Assembly: GCA_037447605.1 (NCBI GenBank) | Contig: CM074810.1 | Coordinates: 2,638,880 to 2,702,879 of the forward strand | Direction: 5' to 3' | From: Zygnema circumcarinatum SAG 698-1b | Taxonomy: Eukaryota > Plantae > Zygnematophyceae | Length of the DNA stretch: 64,000 bases | Shown: piece by piece, positions 17,750-57,596 of the stretch | Position numbering within the stretch: the stretch's first letter is position 1 | How the letters are laid out: each line of letters begins with the position of its first letter | Notes under the pieces: generated by a model | Database searches by the model: none | Told to the model about the DNA's origin: nothing | Seen by the model: the letters and a program-made list of their open reading frames with translations, nothing else | Position numbers and translations under genes: made by a program

Positions 17750-20315
17750 ACAGTACAGTAGGGGGTCCTCATATTTTCCACCCTGGTTCCGGCCAATATG
17801 AGGCGAAAATATTAATTTTGCATATATAAGGTTCGTGTTACGAATAGACGGGTGGTATTATGTTAGGGTTCATGTTGGACCGTACGTATCGTACCGTATG
17901 ATATTGTACCGTATCGTACTGGCTCGTTTAGTATCGTATCGTATCATGCCATATCGTGACGCATACACGTAGTTTTCCGCTCTGTTGTTCGTCTCAGCTC
18001 GTACGACTAGTACGGACAATACCATATCGGGGCGTTTCGTATCGTATCGCCTAGTATCGTAAAGTATCGTACCGGTCGTTTCGTATCGTATCGTATCGAA
18101 GCCAGGAAGAAGGGGAGAAGAGCGACCGCCTCTTACGGCGGCACGAGCGGGGAGATTAGGTGAGTTTTGCGTAAGCCCGTAACGGCTAGTACAGATAGTA
18201 CGGCTAGTACGGCTAGTACGAATAGTACGGCTAACACACGTTACCGTACAAAAAGGTGGTTTCGGCAAAATCGGGAAAATGATACAGCGGCCCCACTTTT
18301 TGGATATCGGCGCCCCCTTTTGGGAAAAAATGTACTTTTTTTTTTGGCTAATTACCCCCCCCCCCTTGGATCTTTCGGGAGGAGAGATCTCGTAGACAAT
18401 CGGACCCCGNNNNNNNNNNTGAGCCCTTTTTCGGTTGGAGTTTTTGCGCCTCGTTTCATGGACCCATATTCGACTAAAACCCACATCAAGAGTGGCTTTT
18501 AGGGTTTTGAGAGGGGTTTTTCTGGCTATTTGGGTTTGGGATTTCCAGTGAAGAAATCTTCGTCATATGTTTTTTACCAGTACAGCCTCAGTCTTGATTG
18601 GTTTAAAAAAAAAAAAAATCAGGTATATATCTAGGCGCCTACAAAAGCCAAGATTAATGTTCCGCGTCTTTTTGAGTCAGATTTGGAAACCACGAGGAGC
18701 CGCGGACCACGGTGTTCTATGTGTCCATGCTTTCAGTAAGCTTCAACTTTGCGAGTGGTTTCTTTTTTCGGACGGTATCTGCGTGGTCCCTCGCAGGGTC
18801 CTCGTATTTACCACCCTAAGGAGTGCGTCCTCAATATTTTCGCCCCGATTTTGGGAAAATGATACAGCGGCCCCACCTTTTGGATATCGGCGCCCCTTTT
18901 GGGAAAAATTGTACTTTTTTTTTTGGCTAATCACCCCCCCCCCTTGGATCTTTCGGGAGGAGAGATCTTGTAGACAATCGGACCCCGCGCCTCGCGCGCA
19001 GGATCCGACCGTCGGATCGTCGGATCGCGCGGCGCGGCCCGCGAGATGCGGCGAGCCTACGGAAAAGTTGTCCTCACCTGACCCGTTTGGGTCAGAGGTT
19101 GCCACGTGGCAGTCTGCCATTGGACAGCCCTGCTGCCGGTCCCCCATGCCGATACAGTGGACCCCCATAATATTTTCCACCTTGTACAGTGCGTCCCCAA
19201 GGAATTTGCCCCGATTTTGCCGAAACCACCTTTTTGTACAGTAACTCAATGTTAACGTATTAGGGGTGTTAACCTAACCTGACCTATTCTCCAATACAAA
19301 ATCTGTTAATCAAAACGGATTTCAAACATGGGTCACGCTTTCACGCTGTACGGTAAATACGAATAAAATCTCTAAGTCGTACGATATACGTACGGCACCA
19401 ATAGGAGCTCTTGTATCTAAATCACGGTACGATACGATACGATACGATACATACGAACAGACATGAACTCTAACATAATACCGCTCGCCTATTGGTAACA
19501 CGGAACTTATATTTGCAAATTACAATATTTTCGCCCAGTATTTGCCGAAACCATGGCGAAAATATTATGGGGGTCCACTGTATCGGCATGGGGGACCGGC
19601 AGCAGGGCTGTCCAATGGTAGACTGCCACGTGGCAACCTCTGACCCAAACGGGTCACGTGAGGACAACTTTTCCGTAGGCTCGCCGCATCTCGCGGGCCG
19701 CGCCGCGCGATCCGACGATCCGACGGTCGGATCCTGCGCGCGAGGCGCGGGGTCCGATTGTCTACAAGATCTCTCCTCCCGAAAGATCCAAGGGGGGGGG
19801 GTGATTAGCCAAAAAAAAAAGTACAATTTTTCCCAAAAGGGGCGCCGATATCCAAAAGGTGGGGCCGCTGTATCATTTTCCCAAAATCGGGGCGAAAATA
19901 TTGAGGACGCACTCCTTAGGGTGGTAAATACGAGGACCCTGCGAGGGACCACGCAGATACCGTCCGAAAAAAGAAACCACTCGCAAAGTTGAAGCTTACT
20001 GAAAGCATGGACACATAGAACACCGTGGTCCGCGGCTCCTCGTGGTTTCCAAATCTGACTCAAAAAGACGCGGAACATTAATCTTGGCTTTTGTAGGCGC
20101 CTAGATATATACCTGATTTTTTTTTTTTTTAAACCAATCAAGACTGAGGCTGTACTGGTAAAAAACATATGACGAAGATTTCTTCACTGGAAATCCCAAA
20201 CCCAAATAGCCAGAAAAACCCCTCTCAAAACCCTAAAAGCCACTCTTGATGTGGGTTTTAGTCGAATATGGGTCCATGAAACGAGGCGCAAAAACTCCAA
20301 CCGAAAAAGGGCTCA
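17750..20315. mobile_element. Nested inverted-repeat (foldback/MITE-like) region
   Basis: 18420-19176 is the near-identical reverse complement of 19558-20315. TIR pair C(C/T)GTACAAAAAGGTGGTTTCGGCAAAATCGGG at 18244 and 19241 flanked by TA. A diverged inverted pair lies at ~17760-17900 / ~19420-19580. (GTATC)n tracts present; gap at 18410. Confidence 0.7.
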
Positions 20316-33067: not shown

Positions 33068-33520
33068 GGGGGCGACTATTTACAGTGTACGGATTCTGAA
33101 TGTAGTGTACGATTTCGCCGGGCAGCAAAAAAATCCTTTTTTGGTTGCCCGGCGCTGTTTCATACTTTTTAGAATAGATACAGACCTTTTTTCGTCGGAT
33201 GTACGGATAGTGATTTGAAATGTACGAAGCGCGCGCGTCTACAAGGTATAAGGGCGCAACACGTGGAGCAACATGATTGGTCGCGGCANNNNNNNNNNTG
33301 CCGCGACCAATCATGTTGCTCCACGTGTTGCGCCCTTATACCTTGTAGACGCGCGCGCTTCGTACATTTCAAATCACTATCCGTACATCCGACGAAAAAA
33401 GGTCTGTATCTATTCTAAAAAGTATGAAACATCGCCGGGCAACCAAAAAAAGGATTTTTTTGCTGCCCGGCGGAATCGTACACTACATTCAGAATCCGTA
33501 CACTGTAAATAGTCGCCCCC
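33068..33520. mobile_element. Long-TIR (>=220 bp) DNA transposon/MITE, Mutator-like, with 8-bp TSD; interior is an N gap
   Basis: Arms 33068-33288 and 33299-33520 are reverse complements with a few substitutions; CTATTTTA duplicated at 33060-33067 and 33521-33528. Confidence 0.85.
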
Positions 33521-37893: not shown

Positions 37894-40800
37894 TTACCGT
37901 CTATCCTTGCAAAATATTTCCATTCTTCTTCATGAGAACCCAACACATGGACGGCAATCCCTCTGCTTCTCTCCACCCCTCTCAGTCGCTCGCTCGCTCG
38001 CTCGCTCTCTCTCTTCCACCTCTCCCTCTACTCTCTTTCATACTCACTTGCCTCTCCCTCTGAACCCTCCTCCCCCTCTCCCTCCTCCGCCTCCCCCTCT
38101 CCCTCCAAACCTCCCTCCACCTCGTCCTCCTCCCCCTCTACCTCCACCTCTCCCGCCGTCTCTCCCTCCCCCTCTCCCTCCACGGAACCCATTCGGACTA
38201 CCTCCTCTCCCCCCTCGGAACCCTCCCGGGCTCCCTCCTCGTCCTCCCCGGAACCCCCCCGGACTATCTCCTCTTCCTCCTCTCCCTCCTCTTCCTCCTC
38301 TATCTCCTCTCCCTCCTCGAAATGCTCCTCTCCCTCCTCGTTCTCCTCCACTTCCTCCTCTCTCCCTCTCCTCCATGAACTTAGCCACCTTTGCAGCCTT
38401 AGCAGGGACAGGTGAAGGCTTGGCTCTCTTTTGTCCGGGCCCTCCAAAGGGTGCATTTGGGGCCAACTCAAGCCCATCCTCATCCTCATCCTCATCGTCG
38501 TCTTCCCCCTCCTCCTCATCCTCATCATCATCATCATCATCATCCAACCCTTCCAGCTGCATATATTGCAAATAAGACCAAAATGAATCAGTTGAAATCA
38601 CCAAAAAGAAGGAAAGATTAAACGTTCCGACAACCCTAACATCGAACAACGCCGAAGAGTGTCCATATTGTAGGAAAGAAACAAGTTAAAGAGGAGAGAG
38701 AGAGCGAGAAAGAGAGAGAGAGAGAGAGAATGCTTTACCTCATCCTCATCTTCATCCTCATCTTCTTCATCATCTCCCTCGGCATCACCGTCTCCTCCCC
38801 ACCCTGGAAGCGCCTTAATAACATCCGATTTCGTCTCCTTTTTCTCCTTTTTGTCCTTTTTCTCTACTTTCTTCTGAACAGTTATTGTTGATTTCGTTTT
38901 CAACTCCTCTTCAACTAAATCATCCTCATCATCCTCCGGCTCAAGTTTAGCCGCCTTTGCAAGAGCTGCCTTTGCCTTTGCGAACCCAAAATCTTTCTGC
39001 TTTGTAACCAACTTTCCATCTGCAAATAGGCCAAAAGTAAGATAAGGGAAAGGGAAATGTTACTTTAACTGAAACCCTGAAACCCTAAACCTCCCAATAC
39101 CCTCTTTCTACATGGAACGTGACATACCTTTCTCATCATCTTCGTCCTCATCCTCCTCATCTTCATCTTCATCCTCGTCCTCATCATCCTCGTCATCGTC
39201 ATCATCATCTTCCATCTGTCTCCGTTGCATTTCCAGCAAATCCAAATCCTCCGGATTTCTGAAGGTCGAACGATTCACGTCAAAAAAAAAACTCTTTCAC
39301 ATTGAAAAAATCTTCACTATCAATTTTTCCATTCAAACTTTTACGCTTTCTCCATCGTACTCTCCCTCCGCCCTCCTTGCCCCCTTCCCCCCACCCCCAC
39401 CCCCCCNNNNNNNNNNCCCCCCCACCCCCCCCTCCTCTCCCCTCCCCCCTTTGATTCCAGAAAGATAAAGAGCCAAAATCAGATAAAATAACAGCGGAAC
39501 AGGATGGAATGGAACAGAACAAAACGGAACAGAACGGAAACGGAACTGAAACGGAAACAGAACGGATACACTCCAAGGGACCACGCCACGGAGGCCACAA
39601 ATCCCGTCACGTGGACGCTAGCGGATCCGTTGTGATGGAACAGAACCTGCACCCGCGCCAGCCTCTCAGAGGCCGCCACGTGTCAAAAGGACAGAGGCTG
39701 TGGCCTGCCACATCATCACCCGGTCAACAGCGGTCAACTTGGTGAATACGATCAAGGCCTTGATCGGCCAATGCAAGTCAAGCAGGTCAACACCAGTCAA
39801 GCAGGTCAACGCAAGTCAAACGGGTCAGTTCAAGTAAACCCCTGCTTTGCTCTGGCTTGAAAAAGAGGACTGTGGGAAAGCTCTGCGAAAAAAATAGCCC
39901 AAGAAAAAACCTAAATGGGCATTTTCGATTATAGATTTTATCTATATGGAATATAAGAAACCCAAAAAGAGAAATTTTGGAGTATACAGTTGGAGGGAAT
40001 TTAAAAATGAAAGCTCACCTGCTCTCCTTCCCCGAATTGCATTTCGAGTGAAAACTGGTCACAGGAACCTGCCCGGAAAGAAAGAAAAATGAAAAAAAAC
40101 GTTCAGAGCTAAGTAACATTTCATCCTTCTACTGAAAAAGGGTTGCAGACGTTGCAGCAACCCCAAATACTTCCATTATAGAAAAAAATCCCCTTGACAA
40201 AGTAAAAATGCATAAGGGGTCACAGAGCTCCTAAAGTAAAAAGCACTCACCCTTCACTAAAGTTCCGATAACTTTCAAATCGCCCTCATCTTCTTCGTCT
40301 TTCTCCTCCTTCTCCTTCTCCTCCTCCTCGTCTTCATCATCATCATCATCGTCATCATCATCAATGTCTCTCACCTGAACCCCACCATCATCATCATCAT
40401 TGAATTAGGGTTTTAGAAAAACCAAAACCTGCGACGCCTTTTGGAATTGAAAAATAAGGGATGAGAAACGTACTCTGCGATGCTGCTCTGCAGAAAACCG
40501 TTGTTAACTTTAACAAGGTTTGACTTTAGTAAGACTTGACTAATGCAGGCTTCCTTCCCCTTACGATGCATACGAGTGGGTCCTCAGATGTCAGTGAATG
40601 CACGAAAAGCGACTTGCATCATTTTCACAAACATTCGAATTGCAGCGATCTATGTGGTTCTGCTTTCCTCAGGATAAATGATCGATATTGGAGGGATATT
40701 ACTTTAGCGAGGGACGGTATTTACCCGAACACTGACGACAACTCGTTCCTTGTCCTTCGCATCCTCTCCAAGCGCCACCTGTCCACGCAACCACCCATCA

Positions 40801-42071: not shown

Positions 42072-42831
42072 GGCGCCGAAGGAGAGAGGCGCCGCCGAAA
42101 AAAGAGAGGAGAAGGGAAACGGTAACAAGGCGCCGCTTTTTGGGACCGCCAAAAAGTTTAAACCCTGGGGGGGGGAGGGGAGGGGGGGGGAGCCTACTCC
42201 TAGCTGCCGTACAGATACTGTAGGCCGTAGGCTCGTACCGTACAAAAACTAGATTGTACTTTACCGTACAACTAATTAGGGTTACAGTACAGTACAGTAC
42301 TGTACTGTACAGTATGTCCGTGCAGAGGACTGGACAGGGACCGTACGGCTCCATGAGGTTTGTCGTACAGTACTGTATAGCGAGGGGATTTTTAGGGACC
42401 GTTGGAGACGGGCAGGGTTTACATATGTGCTAAAGCAGTTTGTCGCCGTTTAACTGGCAAACTCAAACTAGTCACATAGAGCGTGGATCACATGTGATAG
42501 GAACGTTGATCCAGGTCAATACGATACAGTTCTGTATGGTATGATGTATGATATACCCTGATACATCCGATACATCTCGATGCAGTACGATATCGTTCGA
42601 TAACATTCCGATGCAGTACGGTATGTTCGGATATATTCCAATACAGTATGCTATGGCCAAATATATACCGATATAGTACGATATGGTCGATACATCCGTG
42701 TACCATGTTGGAGGCATGCCTGATGAATGAAATGTAGAACCGTCAAAATTTTCAAGAAATTTTTTTTCTACTTTTTTTAGACGCATGATGCATGAAACGT
42801 AGAATCGTCAAAATTTTCATGAAAAGCTTAG

Positions 42832-43502
42832 AGCCAGTGCAGGTTTTAAGGGAGGCGAAAATTTTACGAAAGAGTGTAGAGTAAGGGAGATACGAATAAC
42901 GATAAGCAAAATTAGGTCGAGATTAGGGTTTAAAGAAGAATAGCTTCCATCGAAGCTCTTTCAAGGTTACACCTTTGTTCATTTTCGCACACCAAGGAAT
43001 GTTACGTATAAAGTAAACAGAAGATGATCATTGGGAGGGATCCTAAACACGTAGACCTTGTTTTAAAAAGTGTCAAAAATCGCAGTGCAGTTTTGAACAT
43101 GGCTTTAATAACGAGTGTGCCATTCAAAATTTAAAGAGACAATTTTGTGCGATCGTTTATTTGAATGGAGTTCTGCACAAAATTGTCTCTCTAAATTTTG
43201 AATGACACACTCGTTATTGGAGCCACATTCAAGACTGCACTATTTCTTGAAAATCTTCCTATTTTTGACATTTTTTAAAACAAGGTTTGCGTATTTTGGA
43301 TCCTTCCTAATAATCATCTTTTGTTTACTCCATGTGTACCAATCTTGTGCGAAAGTGGGCAAAGGTGTAGCCTTGAAAGGGCTTCGACGGAGGCTATCCT
43401 TCCCGAAACCCTAATTTCGACTTAATTTTGCTTACCACTATTTGTATCTCCCTTACTCTATACTCTTTCGTAAAATCGCCTCCCTTGAAACCTGCATTGG
43501 TT
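42832..43502. repeat. Inverted duplication (hairpin) of the FHA-exon region; candidate hairpin-RNA locus
   Basis: Arms 42832-43150 and 43175-43502, 24-nt loop; both arms homologous to 47881-48213; ATG->ATA in both arms. Confidence 0.88.
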
Positions 43503-43691
43503 GTAGTTCCTCCTATGCGCAAGGGAAGCAAGACCTGTTCGACGAAAGAGAAGGAAATGGTATTGAATTCCACAACGCCTTGAAGTCGAAATAGCAGAGT
43601 TGGAAAGATACCCTTAGATATCCTTGAGCAGCTAGAATGAATGATCTTTTAGGGTTTTTAGGGTTCTAGATCTGCTTTGAATTTGTTTCAG

Positions 43692-44735
43692 AGGACGATG
43701 AAGACGACAACGATCAAGAGCAAAGAAGGGTTGGATGAAGACGATGAACATGATGAAGGTGATGACGATGCGCAAGAGGTTGAAAAGGCTGAGGATGAGG
43801 AGGTTGAAGAAGATGTAGACCGTGAGGATTCAATAGATGTGCCTGAGACTGATTTTGGAACGGGAGAGGCTGGAAACTGGGAGGAGGAAGATGACGCACC
43901 GGGAGAAGAAGCGTACGACAGGGAAGATGTTGATGAACCTGATAATTTGGAGATAGGTGCAAACATCTGTGGGGGAATGGGAAGTGATGACAATGAGTAC
44001 CAAGAGGATGATCTCGGTGAAAGCCCAGATGACCATCATGATGGAGAACATGAAGCTAACAGAGTTGTAGGGTTTCCTAAGGATGTACATGAATCAGTTA
44101 GTTTTAGTTTTACAGATGAAGAGCCGGAGGTTGAGGGTGGGGAGGAATTGGGATTGAGTGGGGAAGAAGGGGACTGGAGAGAGCACACAGATTGGATGGA
44201 GATAGTCGAGGACGAGTATGAACGGGGGACTCAGGATGGCGATTGTTCTGGAGAAGGTAAGCAGAGTGATTTCTTGGGACAAGGGGCCATGGACGATTTT
44301 GATGGCGGTGTAGACTACAACAACCTAAAAGGAGCTGGAGGGGGTCCTGATGTGGATAGTTCCAATGAAATTTTGGACGGGGACCGAGGATTGTCTCCTT
44401 CTCACGAAGCTGATGTTTATGAGTATGAAGATGACGAAGGTAGCTATAACGATGGACAAGGCGATAGACCTGGAAAAGGAGAAGACAGCGATGAAGATGA
44501 CGAAAAAGATGCGAATGACGATGAAATTTTTGGAGACGATGACTTTGACGACGATGGAAGGGACTTTGATGGAGATTTTGAGAGTACAGATGATGGGAAT
44601 GGAGAAGAGGATATCAGAGACGATGGGGATGATGATGGCGGAGATGGAGACGACGGTGGGGATAAAGAATACGATGGGGAGGGTGATGGTGGGAATGTCG
44701 ATAGCGATGGAATCGATGATGACAGTGATTTGTAA
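43692..44735 (+). CDS. Asp/Glu/Gly-rich acidic exon (open frame), orphaned paralog of 49996-50888
   Basis: 352-aa ORF starting just behind an acceptor tttcag|; no recognisable domain. Confidence 0.5.
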   Translation, partial: RTMKTTTIKSKEGLDEDDEHDEGDDDAQEVEKAEDEEVEEDVDREDSIDVPETDFGTGEAGNWEEEDDAPGEEAYDREDVDEPDNLEIGANICGGMGSDDNEYQEDDLGESPDDHHDGEHEANRVVGFPKDVHESVSFSFTDEEPEVEGGEELGLSGEEGDWREHTDWMEIVEDEYERGTQDGDCSGEGKQSDFLGQGAMDDFDGGVDYNNLKGAGGGPDVDSSNEILDGDRGLSPSHEADVYEYEDDEGSYNDGQGDRPGKGEDSDEDDEKDANDDEIFGDDDFDDDGRDFDGDFESTDDGNGEEDIRDDGDDDGGDGDDGGDKEYDGEGDGGNVDSDGIDDDSDL

Positions 44736-45551
44736 CTGCCCTGCAAAGGACCTCTTGTACTGATTGCTCTCGTGCCTTATGTGAATAGTCGTCCATGCTC
44801 TCTTTGCTGGTAGTAGACCGAGCCAGTCGTTTTGGCATCGTATGAAGCCAAGCTGTCAGATAATGTTCAACACTTGTGTTTGTCTTTGTGGCAACATGTT
44901 TGTCTCCAACGTGTTGGACTTGAAAAAAAAAAAAAAAAGGGGACGGACAGAAATTGACTGCCCGTTCCGAGCTGGAATACAGTTCTTCAACCTCGGCAGC
45001 GCGAGGTTTTGCAGCTTCTTCCTTCCAAACTTTGTGCGCACCTGCCTCAAGGGAGGCAGCATTAGTAGATCTAACCGTTCAGAGATAAAATACAAAGAAT
45101 TATTATAGGGTACAGGGTATATAGGGTATAGGATATAGGGTATAGGGTTTTTAGGGTTTTAAGGTACATACAGTTCAGTTACGATGCATTTGTCTACGTT
45201 CCCTGGAAATTGGGAGTCACGAAAGATGCAAATAAATGGGGTTCGAGGAGTCCCTGGTTTGACACGAACCTGAAGAAAAACAAACCTAAAATTCAAGGAT
45301 TAGGATTCACAAGTAAAAATCTTTGGGCTTCAAACTTAAAATTTCACATACTTCGGATCTAGGCGAAGCGCGTTCAGAGTTCAGGGTTCAAGGGTCAGGG
45401 TTTAGGGTTCAGGATTCATAAAGTGCACATTCTGCTTCCATCAATTTCTAAGGGCTGGAAATTATCGGATTCTGCAGTGACTTAAGCTCAAATCTAAATC
45501 GTGGAATTTTGGAGTTTTAGTCTTAGTTTTATCCCTTACCTCGTAAAGCTC

Positions 45552-45780
45552 TCAGCTGCAGAGCGCATCCCTCCATCGCCGATTCACGGCCCGCCCCACA
45601 AAGCGCTCCCTGAACCCTAATTCTGCACCGATCTGCAGCCTCACTTCATCCGGCAACTGCGGAAACAGAGAAATTGCATCCTCGGTTGAATGAAATGCAG
45701 CTTTGAAGGACCTTTCATCGCGACGGGCTGCACTACTTTCTGAGGCTCCTGAACCCTGCGGGTCTGCCACGGCGAGGGGG
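45552..45780 (-). pseudogene. F-box gene remnant
   Basis: SLFPQLPDEVRLQIGAELGFRERFVGRAVNRRWRDAL followed by a stop. Confidence 0.6.
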
Positions 45781-46143
45781 GAGACCCTGAACCCTAATCC
45801 TCCCCTCCTCTGCAGAGTCTGCGCTGCGCCTTCCAGAGGCTTCCCCTCTGCTGGCACGAGGGCAGGCCACGTGGCAGTGTGCGAGGTCCCTGATTGACTG
45901 GATGCTGGCAGAGAGACAAAATATTTCCAAACGGCCATTTTAAGATAAAGCAATCAATACCGTGGGGGGGAATCTGAATCAGCGTAATTTGGCATACATA
46001 AGCCTAATTTTTTTTAAGAGAGGAGATATGTCATGAAAATTAGGGTTTTCTTTGGCCTAGTTTTGTGCGGAATTCCGTCACAGTTACCGTTCGCAGTTAC
46101 GCCCCACACATAGAACCCGCCTCGTTCCCGGAACACCGCACAG

Positions 46144-47008
46144 ATGGCGGACTTTGGTGAGGGTTCAGGGTTTAGGGTTTAGGGTTCAGGGTTGAGGGTT
46201 TAGAGTTAAGTGTTCAGGGCTCAGGATTGGGTTCAGAGTTTAGGGTTTAGGGTTCAGGGCTCAGGGTTGAGGGTTTAAGGTTTAAGGTTTAGGGTTCAGG
46301 GCTCAGGGTTGAGGGTTTAAAGTTTAGGGTTCAGGGCTCAGGGCTCACGGTTTAGAGTTTAGGGGCTCGGGGCTCAGGGCTCAGAGTTCAGGGTTCAGGG
46401 TTTAGGGTTTAGGGCTCTGGGTTGAGGGTTCAGAGTTTAGGGCTCGGGGTTTAGGGTTTAAGATTTGGGGTTCAGGGCTCACGGTTTAGGGTTCAGGGTT
46501 CAGAATTTAGGATTTAGGGTTTAGGGCTCAGGGTTGAGGGTTTAAATTTTAAGGTTCAGGGCTCAGGGCTCAGGGTTCAGGGCTCAGGGTTCAGAGTTTA
46601 GGGTTTAGGGTTCAGAGTTCAGAGTTTAGGAATTAGGGTTCAGGGCGGAGCCTGCAAGGGTAGACGGTTGTGTTTAGGGTCAGGATTTGGTGACTTTACG
46701 ACTTGAGGGTTCAGGGAGCAGAGAGGGATTTGTTGTTTTAAGGGGCTTAGAAAATTAGGTTTTTACGTTTCCTTCAACTTTTTGAACCGTTTTTGTTTAA
46801 AAGTGACGACTCCTGCAAGTCCGCGTGTTCTGGTCATTGAATTAATGCTTTTGAATGCTTTATTTTCCACCCTGCCCGGCAGGCTACGGGCGCGTGCCCG
46901 AGGAGGAAAAATCGAAACTTATCGAAATGTTTTCCGGAACGTTGCAGAAAAGTACGATCTCATGAACGATGTGATGAGCGCGGGAATGCACCGCCTCTGG
47001 TAGGACAG
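46144..47008 (+). pseudogene. COQ5: Truncated COQ5 copy (end of exon 1 plus exon 2)
   Basis: MADFG|gt and [17 protein letters not shown]; 1-nt deletion and AAG->TAG relative to 53614-53740; transit-peptide region deleted. Confidence 0.82.
46160..46720 (+). repeat. Degenerate telomere-like (TTTAGGG/TTCAGGG/CTCAGGG) intronic array
   Basis: Heptamer periodicity by direct reading. Confidence 0.85.
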
Positions 47009-47986
47009 GTCTCTCTCTCTCTCCCTGTCTCTCTCGCTCTCCCTGTCCCTCTCTCTCTCCCTGTCTCTTAACCCTAATAAACCCTAAAAATTCTAAAAAC
47101 CCTGAAAACCAGATCGAGTTAGGGTTCGGTTCGTACAACGGAATGGACAAGTGACCGTACGATTTCGTAAGGTTTGTCGTGTAGCATGGGGATCTTTAGG
47201 GACCGTTGGAGACGGGCACGGTTTACATGTGAGCTAGCGCAGTTTGTCGCCGTTTAACTGGGAAACTGTAACTAGTCACAAATAGCGTGGATCACATGAT
47301 AGAAACGTTGATCCTGGTCAACACGATACAGTACGGTAATCATTCATATTCCCATACAGTACGATGTGGTCAGATATATCCGGTACCGTACGGTATGGTC
47401 GAATATATCCCGATACCGTACGGTAAGGTCAGACATGATCCCTATACAGTACGATATGGTCAAATATATCTCGATACAAAAGGATATATTCGATACATCC
47501 GATACAGCCGTATACCTCTCTCTTCTGGGCTCTGTTGCAGTGCTGGCGCTGGCGCTGAGCGACAGGGCCGGGCAGCCGGCGGGCATGCAGGAGGCATGCA
47601 TGATGCATAAAACGAGAAACGTCAAAAATTTCAGGAAATTCTTTTTTTTTTTTTCTTCTTTTAGATGCATGATGCATGAAACGTAGAACCGTCAGAATTT
47701 TCAAGATTTTTTTTTTTTTTCTTTTTTTAGATGCATGATGCCTGCATGACTCAAGGCGCATGTACGGTGTTCGGCGTGGGTTGCTCTTGGACGAGGCGTG
47801 GCTGCGCCATGGCAACCTTCAAACGTGAATACAGGGATGCCGGACAGGGTTGGCTTTCGTTGGTTCATAGGAGGAACTCCAGCCAGTGCAGGTTTAAAGG
47901 GAGGCGATTTTACGACAAGAGTTTAGAGTAAGGGAGATACGAATAACGGTAATCAAAATCGGGTCGAAATTAGGGTTTCGGGAAGA

Positions 47987-49973
47987 ATGGCCTCCATCGA
48001 AGCCCTTCCAAGTCTACAACTTCGCTCACTTTCGCACACTCAGGAATGTCATGCATGGTGTAAACAGAAAATGATCATTGGGAGGGATCCAAAACACGCA
48101 GACCTTGTCATAAAAAGTGTCAAAAAGAGGGGAATTTCTAGGAAGCAGTGCAGTCTTGAACGCGTTTCCAATAACGAGTGTGTGATTCAAAATTTAGGGA
48201 GACAGTCTTGTGCGGTCGTTTACCTGAATGGAGTCATCGTGCCGGCTTTGTGCTCGATGAGTTTTCGCATTGGAATCTCAATACAAGTGGGAGAATATCA
48301 GTTTCGCGTGGAGGAATGTTGCTGTAAAGATGTAAGTACCTCACTCATTCTTATATCTACAAGCTCCATCTTTTTAAGTTGTAATCAGCTGGAATTAGGA
48401 ACTTCAGAAGTCATTTTCAATATGTGTAAAAAAAAATTGTGCGTTGCAAGTTGGAAAAACGAAGGCTCAAAGGCTTAAAATAGTTAGTTCTTAAAAATAG
48501 ATAAAGGAAAGAAGGAGGAGGGGCTGGTGCAGATGGAGGAGGGGAGAGGGAAGGAGAGAAAAGGGGAAAAGGGGGGGAAGCTAGAGAGGAGCAGAGGGGA
48601 GAGGGGAAAGAGGGAGGAGAAGAAAGAGGAGATAGGAAAGGAGAATGATATAGTGGAAGCGAAGGAAGGAGAGGAGGAGGAGGAGGAGGAGGAGGAGGAG
48701 GAGGAGGAGAGAGTACAAGTGGTTGGGCCCGTTGTAAGAAAGGCAGGAACAGGAAAGCGGGCTCGATGTTATTATGAATCAGGCGAACCAAATGTTCGCA
48801 AAGGTGCCCGTTTTTTGGACGACAGGGTCAGCAGTAGACGGGAAACAGCCGAGGGGAAGCAGGCAGAATTGGATACCAACATCGAAGTGATAGCTAAATG
48901 TGGAATATGTCTAGAGGAACATACTGGGCATGTAATGTTCCGTATTTTGGGCTGCTCTCACCAATTTTGTTGGCCATGCATGAGGACGTATTCAGAAGTT
49001 GAAATCAAAACACGTCAGTTGCAAATTTCTTGCCCCGTTGTAGAATGTGATACAGCTCTCTCAATTGATGAATGTCGGCAGCTGCTTTCTCCCAGCTCGT
49101 ACGATGCCCTTCTGCAGCAGCAGGCAGAACCCTCCATTGCTGAAAGCGAGAAAATATATTGTCCCTTTAGTGACTGCTCAGCGTTGATAGTCAGAAACCC
49201 TCCTTCTAGTTACATGGCAGCAAACTCTTCTCAAACATCTGCAAGAAACTGTTGGACTATCAACAGAGGCAGAGTGTATGGAATGTCACAGACTCTTTTG
49301 TGTTGAATGTCGCGTCCCTTGGCACGTAGGAATGAATTGCGAGGAGTATGCTGCTCTTCTAGCAGACATAAGCAATACAGAAGATGACCAGCTCTATCAG
49401 CTCGCACAAGATAAAAAATGGAAGCAATGTGCAAAATGTCTGCAGATGATAGAGCATGCTGGCGGCTGCTATCACATGACTTGCAGGTGAGTAATTAACA
49501 GCAAGTTTGAATTTGTTCCAATATCACCAGCTATGGGTTTAAAACTCCGCTTCTACAAATTCACATGTAATGCATGTGTGCATCGACCTTCATTTTTTAT
49601 TTTATGTCAAGTCAGGTTGACTCGCATATCCTTGGTAGAAAGGGAGCAGCGGCAGCCATTAGGCATGAGCGCCGGGGTTTTGGGTTTTAGAGTATTTTCA
49701 GGTTATGTGAGCTGCAGAAAAGTTCGGTGTTGCATTCAAATTTTGAGAATCAAATGGATTGAATGTTTCGAAATTCGCTCTCTGCGCAGGTGTGGGCATG
49801 AATTCTGCTACGTATGTGCGGCTCCTTGGCAGAACAAACTCCCCACATGCAGTTGCCGGCTTTGGGGTATTGATTTCCTTTTCCGATTTGCAAATGAAGC
49901 CTGTGAAATGATTCCAGAAGGCCTTGAAGAAGAAATAGAAGAGTTGGAAGATGCCTTTGAGCTGCGAGAATGA
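47987..49973 (+). CDS. FHA + RING1-IBR-RING2 (RBR) E3 ligase gene, with an apparent frameshift inside the IBR
   Basis: Exon 47987-48331 FHA (IIGRD, ISRKQC, IQNLG, YLNG); exon ~48533-49487 RING1 (CGIC...CSHQFCWPC...CPVVEC), IBR (CPFSDC / CMECHRLFCVECRVPWH, frame change ~49200-49270), RING2 start (CAKC...GGCYHMTCR); exon 49790-49973 (CGHEFCYVC). Confidence 0.78.
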
Positions 49974-49995
49974 TCTGCTTTGAATTTATTTCCAG

Positions 49996-50888
49996 AGGAC
50001 GGTGAAGACGACAGCAATGAAGAGCAGGAAGGGTTGGATGAAGATGATGAAGGTGCACAGGACGTTGAAAAAGTTGAAGATGAGGAGATTGAAGAGGATG
50101 TGGAGCGTGAGGATTCAATAGATGTGCCGGAGACTGATTTTGGAACGGGAGAGGCGAGAAATCGGGAGGAGGAAGATGACGCACCGGGAGAAGAAGATGA
50201 ACCTGATAATTTGGAGATAGAGGGACATGTGGGGGGGAATGGGAAGTGATGACATTGAGGACCAAGAGGATGATCTCGGTGAAAGCACAGATGACCATCA
50301 TGATGAAGATCATGAAGCTAACAGAGTTGTAGGGTTTCCTGAGGATGTACATGGATCAGTTAGTTTTACAGATGAAGAGCCGGAGGATGAGGGTGGGGAG
50401 GAAGTGGGATTGGGTGGGGAAGAAGAGGACTGGAGAGAGCACACAGATTGGATGGAGATAGTCGAGGAAGAATATTGGGGGGGACTGAGGATGGTGATTG
50501 TTCTGGAGAAGGTAAGCAGAACGATTTCTTGGGACAAGGGGCCATGGACGATTTTGATGGCGGTGTAGACTACAACAACCTAAAAGAAGGAGCTGGAGGG
50601 GGTTCTGATGTGGATAGTTCCAATGAAATTTTGGACGGAGACCGAGGATTGTCTCCTTCTCACGAAGATGGAAAAGGAAAAAACAGCGATGAAGATGACG
50701 AAAAAGATGCGGAGGACGATGACATTTTTGGAGACGATGACTTTGACGACGATGGAAGGGACTTTGATGGAGATTTTGAGAGTGCAGATGATGGGAAGGG
50801 GGAGGAGGATAGCGGTGACGATGGGGATGATGATGGTGGAGATGAAGATGGGGACGGTGGTGATGACGAAGGTATTCACATACTGTAA
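49996..50888 (+). pseudogene. Acidic exon copy B with two frameshifts
   Basis: Homologous to 43692-44735 but split over ORFs 49980, 50227 and 50448. Confidence 0.65.
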
Positions 50889-52279
50889 GGCCCTAGAGCA
50901 GCCTGTACAAGAGGTCCTCTGCAGGGCTGTCATCATCGCTATCACATTCCCAGCATCACCCTTCCCATCTACGTCCATGCTCACTTTGCTGGCAGTTAAC
51001 GTGTTTGTCTGTGTGGCAACATGTTTGTCCCCAACGTGTTGGACTTGAAAAAAAAAAAAAAAAGAAAAAAAACAGACAGAAATTGACTGCCCATTCCGAT
51101 CTGGAATACAGTTCTTCAACCTCGTCAGTGAGAGGTTTTGCAGCTTCTTCCCTTCTGCAAACTTTGTGCGCACCTGCCTCAATAGATCTAACCGTTCAGA
51201 GATAAAATACAAAGAATTATTATAGGGTATACAGGGTTTAGGATATAGGCTATGTATATATTGAAATTCAACAGAGGGTATAGGGTATAGGATATAGGGT
51301 ATAGGGTGTAGGGTTATGGGTTTTTAGGTACATGCATTTCAGTTACGATGCATTTGTCTACGTGCAACTTTGACTCGTGGGAACACACGGGTCCTGGTGT
51401 GGTGGCGAGTGCCTTTCTTGCGCAAGTAACGCTGCTAATCTGTGAAGATTTTGCTTTCCCTTTAAGTCCAGCTTTCGTAGCTGCAGACATCAAACAAGCG
51501 TTGCCCAATAATCCAATTCAATCGAAGCCTGAAGATGTTTAATCACAACCAGGGTACGTTCCAAGCTCGCTTCTGAATCAATCGTGAAAGGTCGCGGCAT
51601 TGATGCCTTTGATATTGAATTAGCTGCTATTGTTGGACAGAAGTGTTGGCAATGTGACCTTAAGGAGGTGCAGCATAGAGACCAACCAGAGGAGAGACTG
51701 CAGACTTCCTTCTTTCTTCTTTGCAGCAAATGCCGGAACCACTGAGGCGTTGGTTGCATATCTCAATATGATAATAATATAACATATGATATATATATAA
51801 TATTTCTCATATCTCATATCTCATATATATATCTGTATATGCTGCCACTCCTTGTATGTTCAATTGGAGCGATTGAGGGTGTGCGTCTCTTTGTCCGGCA
51901 TGAACGTGCATGGTATCTTCCCTGGAAATTGGGAGTCACGAAAGATGCAAACAAATGGGGTTCGAGGAGTCCCTGGTTTGACACGAGCCTGGAGAAAAAC
52001 AAACCTAAAATTCAAGGATTAGGATTCACAAGTAAAGAATCTTTGAGCTTCAAACTTAAGCTTTCACATACTTCGGGTCTAAGCAAAGCGTGGGTTCAGA
52101 GTTCAGGGTTAAGGGTCAGGGTTTAGGGTTCAGGATTCATCAAGCGCACATTCTGCTTCCATCAATTTCTAAGCTCTGGAAACTACAGGATTCTGCAGCG
52201 ACTTAAGCTCAAATCTAAATCGTGGAGTTTTGGAGTTCTTAGTTTTAGTTTTAGTTTTATCCCTGATCTCGTAGAACTC

Positions 52280-52468
52280 TCACCTGCAGAGCGCATCAAA
52301 GCGCTCCCTGAACCCTAATTCTGCACCGATCTGCAGTCCCACTTCATCCGGCAACTGCGGAAATAAAGAAATTGCATCCTCGATTGAATGAAATGCAGCT
52401 TTTAAGGACCTTTCATCGCGACGGGCTGCACTACTTTCTGAGCCTCCTGAACCCTGCGGGTCTGCCAT
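52280..52468 (-). pseudogene. F-box remnant copy B, divergent from COQ5
   Basis: LPDEVGLQIGAELGFRERF with an internal deletion relative to copy A. Confidence 0.55.
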
Positions 52469-52923
52469 GGCGGAGCGGGTTGGCCCTGAACCCTAATCCT
52501 CCCCTCCTCTGCAGAGTCTGCGCTGCGCCTTCCAGAGGGTTCGAACCAAGCACCTAAGCAGGCTCCCCCTCTGCTGGCACGAGGGCAGGCCACGTGGCAG
52601 CGAGCTAGGTCCCTGATTGACTGCTGGCATAGAAACAGAAATTTTCCAAACGGCAATTTTAAAATAAAGCAATCAATACCTATTACTTCAGAATCTGAAT
52701 TAGCGTAGTTTGGCATTCATAAACCTAAAATTATTAAGAGAGGAGATAAGGTTGTATAGAAGAGGGTTTTATTTGGCCTAGTTCTGTGCAGAATTCCGTC
52801 ACAGTTACCGTTCGCCGTTACGTCCCACACAGAGAAACCGCCTCGTTCCCGGAATACCTCACGGTTTCGTTGTGTGACGCGGCACGAGAGTGCCACGTCA
52901 GCCCTAATTTGGATCAGACAGCC

Positions 52924-57596
<4,673 letters not shown>

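Follow-up and report, generated by a model that had tools for sequence, protein, structure and literature searches.

A gene-derived fold-back beside its FHA-RBR paralog in the alga Zygnema circumcarinatum, with a C-to-T footprint in its paired arms that suggests cytosine methylation

When the start of a gene has been copied in inverted orientation beside a surviving paralog, is the resulting palindrome a source of silencing RNA, or is it a relic? The question is raised by a locus of Zygnema circumcarinatum SAG 698-1b that lies in a 64-kb stretch of contig CM074810.1; this whole stretch is referred to below as the window. Inverted duplication of target genes is the model for the origin of young MIRNA and hairpin-siRNA loci (PMC1790633, PMC3237417), and a Pol IV/V-like polymerase occurs in streptophyte algae together with DCL and AGO (PMC7994812, PMC11194755). 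Hardly anything is said to be known about the small RNAs of these algae (PMC7994812), and it is an open question whether DNA methylation guided by small RNAs existed before land plants (PMC11194755). An initial annotation proposed that one copy of a duplicated FHA-RBR gene had been turned into a hairpin able to silence the neighbouring gene or its family. The sequence comparisons described here indicate that the locus is a real, old and well-preserved fold-back; its regulatory function is putative and unproven.

An inverted-repeat search placed the near-palindrome at 42832-43500; its arms are 319 and 326 nt long and its loop 24 nt, in agreement with the inverted copy of an upstream region plus FHA exon (arms of about 320 bp, 24-nt loop) that had been annotated. 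The arms are made up of three pairs of segments, all collinear, at 42861-42991/43346-43476 (86%), 42997-43080/43261-43344 (82%) and 43084-43150/43175-43241 (90%), the innermost pair being separated by 24 nt. Overall the arms are 85.5% complementary, rising to 93% when G:U pairs in the plus-strand RNA are counted, and their alignment contains 45 mismatches over 310 sites and three indels. Folded as RNA, the 686 nt of the plus strand are predicted to form the single long hairpin that had been expected, at -437.5 kcal/mol compared with -158 for dinucleotide shuffles (z -48). The minus strand of the fold-back gives -394.1 kcal/mol (z -44), ie the plus strand folds better by 43 kcal/mol. The longest perfect duplex within the hairpin is 17 bp.

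Both arms had been said to match a segment about 5 kb away, at 47881-48213, and BLAST and MAFFT alignments gave the same result at 84-85% identity. That segment belongs to a paralog, here called copy B; the damaged copy that contains the fold-back is copy A. The whole of the B sequence represented in the arms and loop is 47841-48243 (plus strand), comprising the 5' leader and the start of the FHA exon. The left arm (42832-43150, plus strand) is the collinear copy of the 5' leader and the first two-thirds of the FHA exon, and its direct alignment extends over 42832-43171 against B 47881-48234. When aligned with B 47881-48213 it shows a change of ATG to ATA, an in-frame stop and a 16-nt deletion, and tblastn finds 69% and 67% identity in two frames. 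The 24-nt loop (43151-43174, plus strand) is the left copy carried forward to the turning point and corresponds to B 48214-48241. The paired part of the right arm (43175-43500, minus strand) is the reverse complement of B 48213-47881 and has a 4-nt deletion and the same change of ATG to ATA. The start codon was indeed lost from both arms, as annotated: each has ATA at the site of the copy B ATG (47987). The annotated right arm held as far as its paired part is concerned, but its true end was found by BLAST 41 nt further on, at 43541, the reverse alignment being 43175-43541 against 48213-47841. This extension (43501-43541, minus strand), the reverse complement of B 47880-47841, is unpaired at present because the equivalent of B 47707-47880, the 174 nt which directly precede the arm in B, is missing from copy A just upstream of the left arm.

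Self-BLAST of the region showed a tandem duplication, with copy A at 42316-47068 and copy B at 47129-53794. A telomere-like array is also present within 42400-48400. Elsewhere the window contains a Harbinger element and other inverted repeats, two of which are 98-100% identical and touch runs of N, and a P450 ORF with at best 41-48% identity to its matches, the named ones being land-plant proteins.

The parent had been described as an FHA-RBR paralog. Its FHA, RING and IBR domains are present in copy B, but the frame is broken in the IBR linker. Exon 1 (47987-48331, plus strand) consists of the ATG and an FHA domain (Pfam PF00498, E 2.2e-6, 28.5 bits, cut-off 20.7), followed by a GTAAGT donor at 48332. 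The RING1-IBR-RING2 series follows, with Pfam matches to zf-C3HC4 (22.9 bits, cut-off 21) and IBR (30.4 bits, cut-off 24.3) and IBR/RING2 matches in the last exon, and the Atlas neighbours of copy B are RBR-type E3s (score 0.94). Three-frame translation located a discontinuity at 49209-49245 (plus strand); the frame that contains RING1 and the first two IBR cysteines stops at 49304, and the remainder of IBR is in another frame, ie the uninterrupted frame of an RBR E3 was not found in copy B. A 37-nt intron at 49209-49245 that restored the frame was considered and rejected as implausibly short. The break may be genuine or may stem from an indel in the assembly, and copy B may itself be a pseudogene. 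Further downstream, a candidate donor at 49867 in RING2 and an acceptor ending at 49995 join RING2 to an acidic region in frame, a join that has a 1-in-3 chance of arising by accident, and the ancestral gene was probably an FHA-RBR with an acidic tail. The copy B counterpart of the acidic ORF carries -1, -2 and -1 indels. Homologs were searched for with the FHA exon, the RING region and the acidic ORF one at a time. The single-exon search with the RING ORF found no homolog, the FHA exon matched only a spurious 2203-aa repeat protein among 1.84 billion representatives, and an exact protein look-up of contigs for the acidic and FHA ORFs found no contig.

In copy A the region upstream of the fold-back (42316-42822, plus strand) is homologous to B 47129-47706, in BLAST blocks 42316-42698/47129-47501 and 42704-42822/47584-47706. 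The 174 nt expected next, between this region and the left arm, were lost from copy A at a later stage, and their deletion may have removed its proximal promoter. About 1.65 kb of copy B (48244-49888, plus strand), containing the end of the FHA exon, intron 1, RING1, IBR and RING2, has no counterpart in copy A, and tblastn detected no RING or IBR coding similarity there, as expected from the annotated loss of the RING-IBR-RING part. The remnant of the last RBR exon reported beyond the hairpin was recovered at 43554-43640 (plus strand); it matches B 49905-49973 including its TGA, and here copy A rejoins B. Between the right arm and this remnant, at the second junction, are 12 nt of unclear origin (43542-43553). 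Copy A then has an intact acidic (D/E-rich) ORF of 345 aa with its own ATG (43698-44735, plus strand), 157 nt downstream of the fold-back; the ATG at 43698 is in frame with the acidic region through a 1-nt indel in copy A. No Pfam family and no database homolog was found for this ORF. Counted by codon position, the A/B differences within it number 20, 13 and 33 (p 0.009), and 32% of them are synonymous, compared with 19% expected; the acidic region has therefore coded for protein during some or all of its history. A transcription unit that is still used may have the fold-back in its leader or its promoter.

Since copy B serves as an outgroup, the substitutions in the arms can be polarised. A three-way comparison gave 22 changes specific to the left arm, 21 specific to the right arm and 22 on the B lineage (or on the stem common to both arms). 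The differences between the arms are almost exclusively transitions, and about three-quarters of the arm-specific changes are GC-to-AT, 17 of 22 in the left arm and 15 of 21 in the right, in a polarised sample that is small (43 changes). On the B lineage only 3 of 22 changes are GC-to-AT and 11 of 22 show the reverse pattern; those 11 are better read as further C-to-T changes common to both arms. In direct comparison with B, the left arm has 31 AT-for-GC transitions and 6 in the opposite direction (p 4e-5), and the right arm 33 and 12. No such skew is seen in six flanking blocks of the A/B duplication (19:24, 6:3, 24:24, 4:8, 25:28 and 7:4). After strict column filtering, the ratio of transitions to transversions is 34:4 between the arms compared with 117:93 in the flanks (Fisher p 4.7e-5), and the polarity is 24:5 in the left arm and 24:8 in the right compared with 56:61 in the flanks. 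On the few sites available, the bias is absent from the unpaired extension at 43501-43541 (1:3 GC-to-AT against the reverse, 5 transversions) and from the 140 nt after 43541 (5:3, 9 transversions). The GC content of the arms is down to 38-39%, compared with 44% in B. By context, C-to-T changes were found at 9 of 36 CHG sites (25%), 18 of 174 CHH sites (10%) and 5 of 50 CG sites (10%), and the CHG rate is above that of the other contexts (p 0.024).

The B-specific changes comprise 12 nonsynonymous and 7 synonymous, which suggests that constraint on the B exon is weak at best. Such constraint could account for part of the asymmetry between A and B, but it does not explain the transition excess between the arms. 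Mutagenic repair synthesis was rejected as the source of the C-to-T changes: the template arm and the copied arm are equally loaded, and the rest of copy A is unaffected. GC-to-AT changes occur in the two arms alike and on either strand, which points to deamination as the cause rather than to selection for RNA pairing. The simplest reading of the substitutions is that the inverted repeat has long been densely methylated at its cytosines, which were then deaminated.

The explanation that we rank first, with slightly better than even confidence, is that the locus is a rearrangement relic that became methylated. The inverted repeat, lying in a plant-lineage genome, would have become the target of dense cytosine methylation, and the paired part of both arms would then have decayed chiefly as cytosines in CG, CHG and CHH contexts were deaminated to T. 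In plants inverted-repeat DNA is invariably and intrinsically methylated; the methylation occurs without transcription or RdDM, persists in Pol IV and AGO4 mutants and self-silences hairpin transgenes, and in the natural PAI1-PAI4 repeat it does not depend on transcription of the repeat (PMC9263138). Close parallels are PAI1-PAI4 of Arabidopsis Ws, an endogenous inverted duplication of gene sequence like the present one, and hairpin-RNA transgenes (PMC9263138, PMC3203196). Repeats of the PAI1-PAI4 type attract dense methylation, and the restriction of the C-to-T footprint to the paired arms is as expected for such a repeat. There are two differences. Methylation of the Zygnema repeat is indicated indirectly, by the excess of GC-to-AT transitions in its paired arms, and PAI1-PAI4 methylates unlinked copies in trans whereas no corresponding footprint is seen in copy B; copy B has 3 GC-to-AT changes among 22 lineage-specific ones, and selection on B could have masked such a footprint. 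The most probable present state of the locus is that of a methylated repeat, self-silenced at least in part, next to a paralog in decay. As methylation of this kind can occur without siRNAs, the footprint supports a methylated repeat and is no proof of a hairpin-siRNA locus.

The proposal of the initial annotation, that the hairpin is an active hairpin-siRNA or proto-MIRNA locus, goes further: a plus-strand transcript spanning both arms would fold and be diced, and the siRNAs would repress the neighbouring FHA-RBR gene or unlinked members of its family. We regard this as possible but doubtful. The underlying architecture is as proposed, an inverted leader and FHA exon in place beside their paralog, which is the arrangement of the inverted-duplication model (PMC1790633, PMC3237417). 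The locus has the long inverted repeat, short loop and, as predicted by folding, extended duplex of hp-siRNA/hpRNA loci, and its arms are gene-derived and retain complementarity to a protein-coding founder. The region may be transcribed, because the acidic ORF, intact and apparently under constraint, follows at a distance of 157 nt in the same orientation. If it were transcribed from the plus strand, for example as the leader of that ORF, the RNA would form a very stable hairpin, 93% paired, and dicing of this putative hairpin could yield siRNAs with a remaining match to the leader and FHA exon of the parent: 128 of 320 21-mers in the left arm and 164 of 347 in the right have three or fewer mismatches to B, and exact runs of 25 and 23 nt are shared with the B leader. 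Decay by C-to-T changes would also break DNA identity while keeping G:U pairs, and mismatched hairpins with G:U pairs are known to escape self-silencing when engineered (PMC9263138).

Other observations weigh against an active locus. Of the 45 mismatches, slightly more are retained as G:U rather than A:C in the plus-strand RNA than in the minus (24 vs 16), and the plus strand also folds better, but as a sign of selection on RNA pairing this wobble bias is not significant (p 0.27). The proximal promoter may have gone with the 174 nt deleted upstream of the left arm, and the longest perfect duplex is short at 17 bp. Copy B has only 3 GC-to-AT changes, ie no footprint of C-to-T decay in trans, and it has a frame break, and there may therefore be nothing left nearby to regulate. 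None of the sequencing runs that share sampled 31-mers of 42300-44300 is on record as RNA. Thirteen runs of unrecorded kind contain 18-39% of these 31-mers, a share which, at a guess, would fit coverage of the acidic ORF alone.

Classification as a MIRNA fares less well. Under the criteria of Axtell and Meyers (2018) a plant MIRNA is reportedly a short single hairpin with a fold-back of up to about 300 nt; the present fold-back is 686 nt long, with arms of 319 and 326 nt, and falls outside that size. The Rfam search gave only sub-threshold, mutually inconsistent MIR matches, eg MIR821 at 65 bits (cut-off 249). MIR161 and MIR163 are young Arabidopsis loci placed under the inverted-duplication model. 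Young Arabidopsis MIRNA and hp-siRNA loci (PMC1790633, PMC3237417) resemble the Zygnema locus in that both arms are similar to the founder gene beyond a single small-RNA site, in the short loop, and in having the founder or its family as the presumed target. They differ in that the present fold-back, with arms of about 320 nt, is far above annotated precursors in size and is known from DNA alone, and in that its host is a streptophyte alga, its paralog is 5 kb away and its own gene body has been replaced. A similar comparison can be made with Drosophila hpRNA loci, which derive from, and suppress, young protein-coding genes (PMC10317233). They too are long, gene-derived inverted repeats, there as here a potential source of endo-siRNAs against the parental family, but they operate in animal RNAi without DNA methylation, and siRNAs and phenotypes have been demonstrated for them, whereas the Zygnema locus is known as DNA.

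A plain neutral relic, in which relaxed constraint, ordinary mutation bias and sampling noise have produced the pattern without any special epigenetic state, is improbable, and less credible than the siRNA locus. GC-to-AT bias is common in eukaryotic mutation spectra. The polarised changes number only 43, and 11 of 19 B-specific changes are at third codon positions, so that constraint on B may explain part of the asymmetry. Against this, non-coding duplicated flanks of the same age have a ratio of transitions to transversions of about 1.3 and no polarity, where the arms have 34:4 (p 4.7e-5); the per-lineage divergence of the arms, about 7%, exceeds the 2.5-5% of the downstream flanks; and the bias is absent, on few sites, just past the paired part.

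The preferred reading, a methylated relic, presupposes a rearrangement, and the junctions show how it arose. Expressed in B coordinates, copy A runs through 47881-48243, returns over 48213-47841 in reverse and resumes at about 49889. Forward homology to B ends at about 43176 and the reverse copy begins at 43175. The upstream region and the loop are collinear with B, which identifies the left arm as the original copy. The inverted copy abuts the original, the spacer continues the original and the skipped DNA is deleted, as in fold-back or template-switch events. The two switches, no more than about 2 kb apart, and the spacer as a continuation of the original copy fit a replication-based event of this kind. 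We propose a single fold-back (template-switch) event in place, in copy A of a tandemly duplicated FHA-RING1-IBR-RING2(-acidic tail) gene. As the sequence shows, synthesis proceeded forward to the equivalent of B 48243, turned onto the opposite strand some 30 nt behind, copied about 370 nt backwards to B 47841, and then jumped forward to about B 49889-49905. The outcome was the loss of about 1.65 kb of coding sequence and the creation of a 0.7-kb near-palindrome from the gene's own leader and FHA exon. The near-equal numbers of changes (22, 21 and 22) suggest that the inversion is therefore approximately as old as the A/B duplication, or that the arms evolve faster.

Replication-based rearrangements of the FoSTeS/MMBIR type give inverted duplication with deletion. 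The likeness to them includes the abutting inverted copy, the short spacer continuing the original, the second switch about 2 kb away with the skipped segment deleted, and the location of all junctions within a few kb. The difference lies in the junction microhomology, which is at most 2-3 nt (GC) at the turning point and is not readable with confidence after about 15% divergence.

A very unlikely alternative to this event is a transposon-borne gene fragment, ie a fold-back, Pack-MULE or Helitron-type capture inserted in copy A. Long terminal inverted repeats with pieces of host genes are typical of such elements, and the window does hold the Harbinger element and the other inverted repeats already mentioned. 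However, copy A is collinear with B through the upstream region, the left arm and the loop and rejoins B in register past the right arm, there are no further copies of the arm sequence within the 64-kb window, and no foreign sequence lies between the arms. A gene-capturing transposon was rejected as a candidate on the collinearity of the locus with B and the lack of other copies in the window. A palindromic long-read chimera introduced during assembly is just as improbable. Fold-back chimeras do occur in long-read data, and the two other inverted repeats noted above are 98-100% identical and touch N runs, but such a chimera is excluded here: its arms would match perfectly, whereas the present ones show 45 mismatches over 310 sites and three indels; three studies provide six DNA runs that contain 97% of the sampled 31-mers of 42300-44300; and the nearest N run is at 39407. 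Together, transposon capture and assembly artefact retain a very small share of the probability.

Should nothing be transcribed from the fold-back, the locus would still be a well-resolved case of a template switch by which one of two duplicate gene copies was destroyed. It also illustrates that arms which differ only by transitions are not necessarily the product of selection for RNA pairing. With the founder gene kept 5 kb away, substitutions in the arms can be polarised, and the history of an inverted repeat can be read out from sequence. Beyond this we suggest, tentatively and as less likely than the methylated relic itself, that in a streptophyte alga inverted repeats already trigger cytosine methylation, possibly with hairpin siRNAs as guides, leaving a footprint coextensive with the paired arms, and that the C-to-T decay converts a perfect palindrome of self-silenced DNA into a mismatched locus whose RNA would still pair through G:U. 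If that is true, the locus would be a natural counterpart of the engineered 'G:U hairpin', which avoids self-silencing (PMC9263138), and would offer a concrete route from a gene fold-back to a working hpRNA or MIRNA. Confirmation by methylation and small-RNA data would date repeat-triggered silencing to before land plants and would show how fold-backs mature towards hairpin-RNA genes.

In copy B, the parent paralogue of the tandem duplication, positions 47987-50249 encode an FHA domain fused to RING1-IBR-RING2, and the long acidic tail is probably also part of the same gene. A literature search found no description of the FHA-RBR architecture, and a search of 1.84 billion representative proteins with the FHA exon of copy B gave no significant relative. 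Within the IBR domain of this copy the reading frame is broken at 49209-49245, owing either to a pseudogenising indel or to an error in the assembly.

Ahead of the gene the tandem repeats at 42600-42700 in copy A and 47330-47500 in copy B are where the two copies have diverged most, with 79% identity. In both copies short units (gatacagtacggtatggtc-like), each about 30 nt long and arranged in tandem, are followed by 66-nt repeats with a T-run at the end of every repeat. Each copy also carries an interstitial array of degenerate 7-nt telomere-like units, at 46139-46730 (copy A) and 53007-53450 (copy B), and a third array lies in reverse orientation at 55092-55608. On the minus strand of the duplicated unit there is an ORF at 45552-45953 in copy A, with a weak F-box-like match below the Pfam cut-off (E = 0.0017); its copy B counterpart is near 52250-52650.

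Apart from the fold-back in copy A, the window contains two further inverted repeats. The first is perfect (100% identity), with arms of 758 nt at 18420-19177 and 19558-20315 and a spacer of 380 nt; 10 N (18410-18419) stand directly before it. No coding sequence is evident in this repeat, which is either very young or a product of assembly. The second is a palindrome at 33127-33460 with 167-nt arms, 98% complementary and without a spacer, and with outer 75-nt arms at 33068-33142 and 33446-33520. Its structure is suspect because a run of 10 N (33289-33298) lies at the centre of symmetry.

In copy A, which is wrecked elsewhere, the acidic ORF (43698-44735, 345 amino acids), a D/E-rich frame on the plus strand 157 nt downstream of the fold-back, is intact and has a new in-frame ATG generated by a 1-nt indel, whereas its counterpart in copy B (50002-50890) has three frame shifts. 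Differences between the two copies are in excess at third codon positions, and this pattern of substitution indicates coding constraint on the acidic ORF, past or present. The ancestral gene may have been partitioned between copies A and B.
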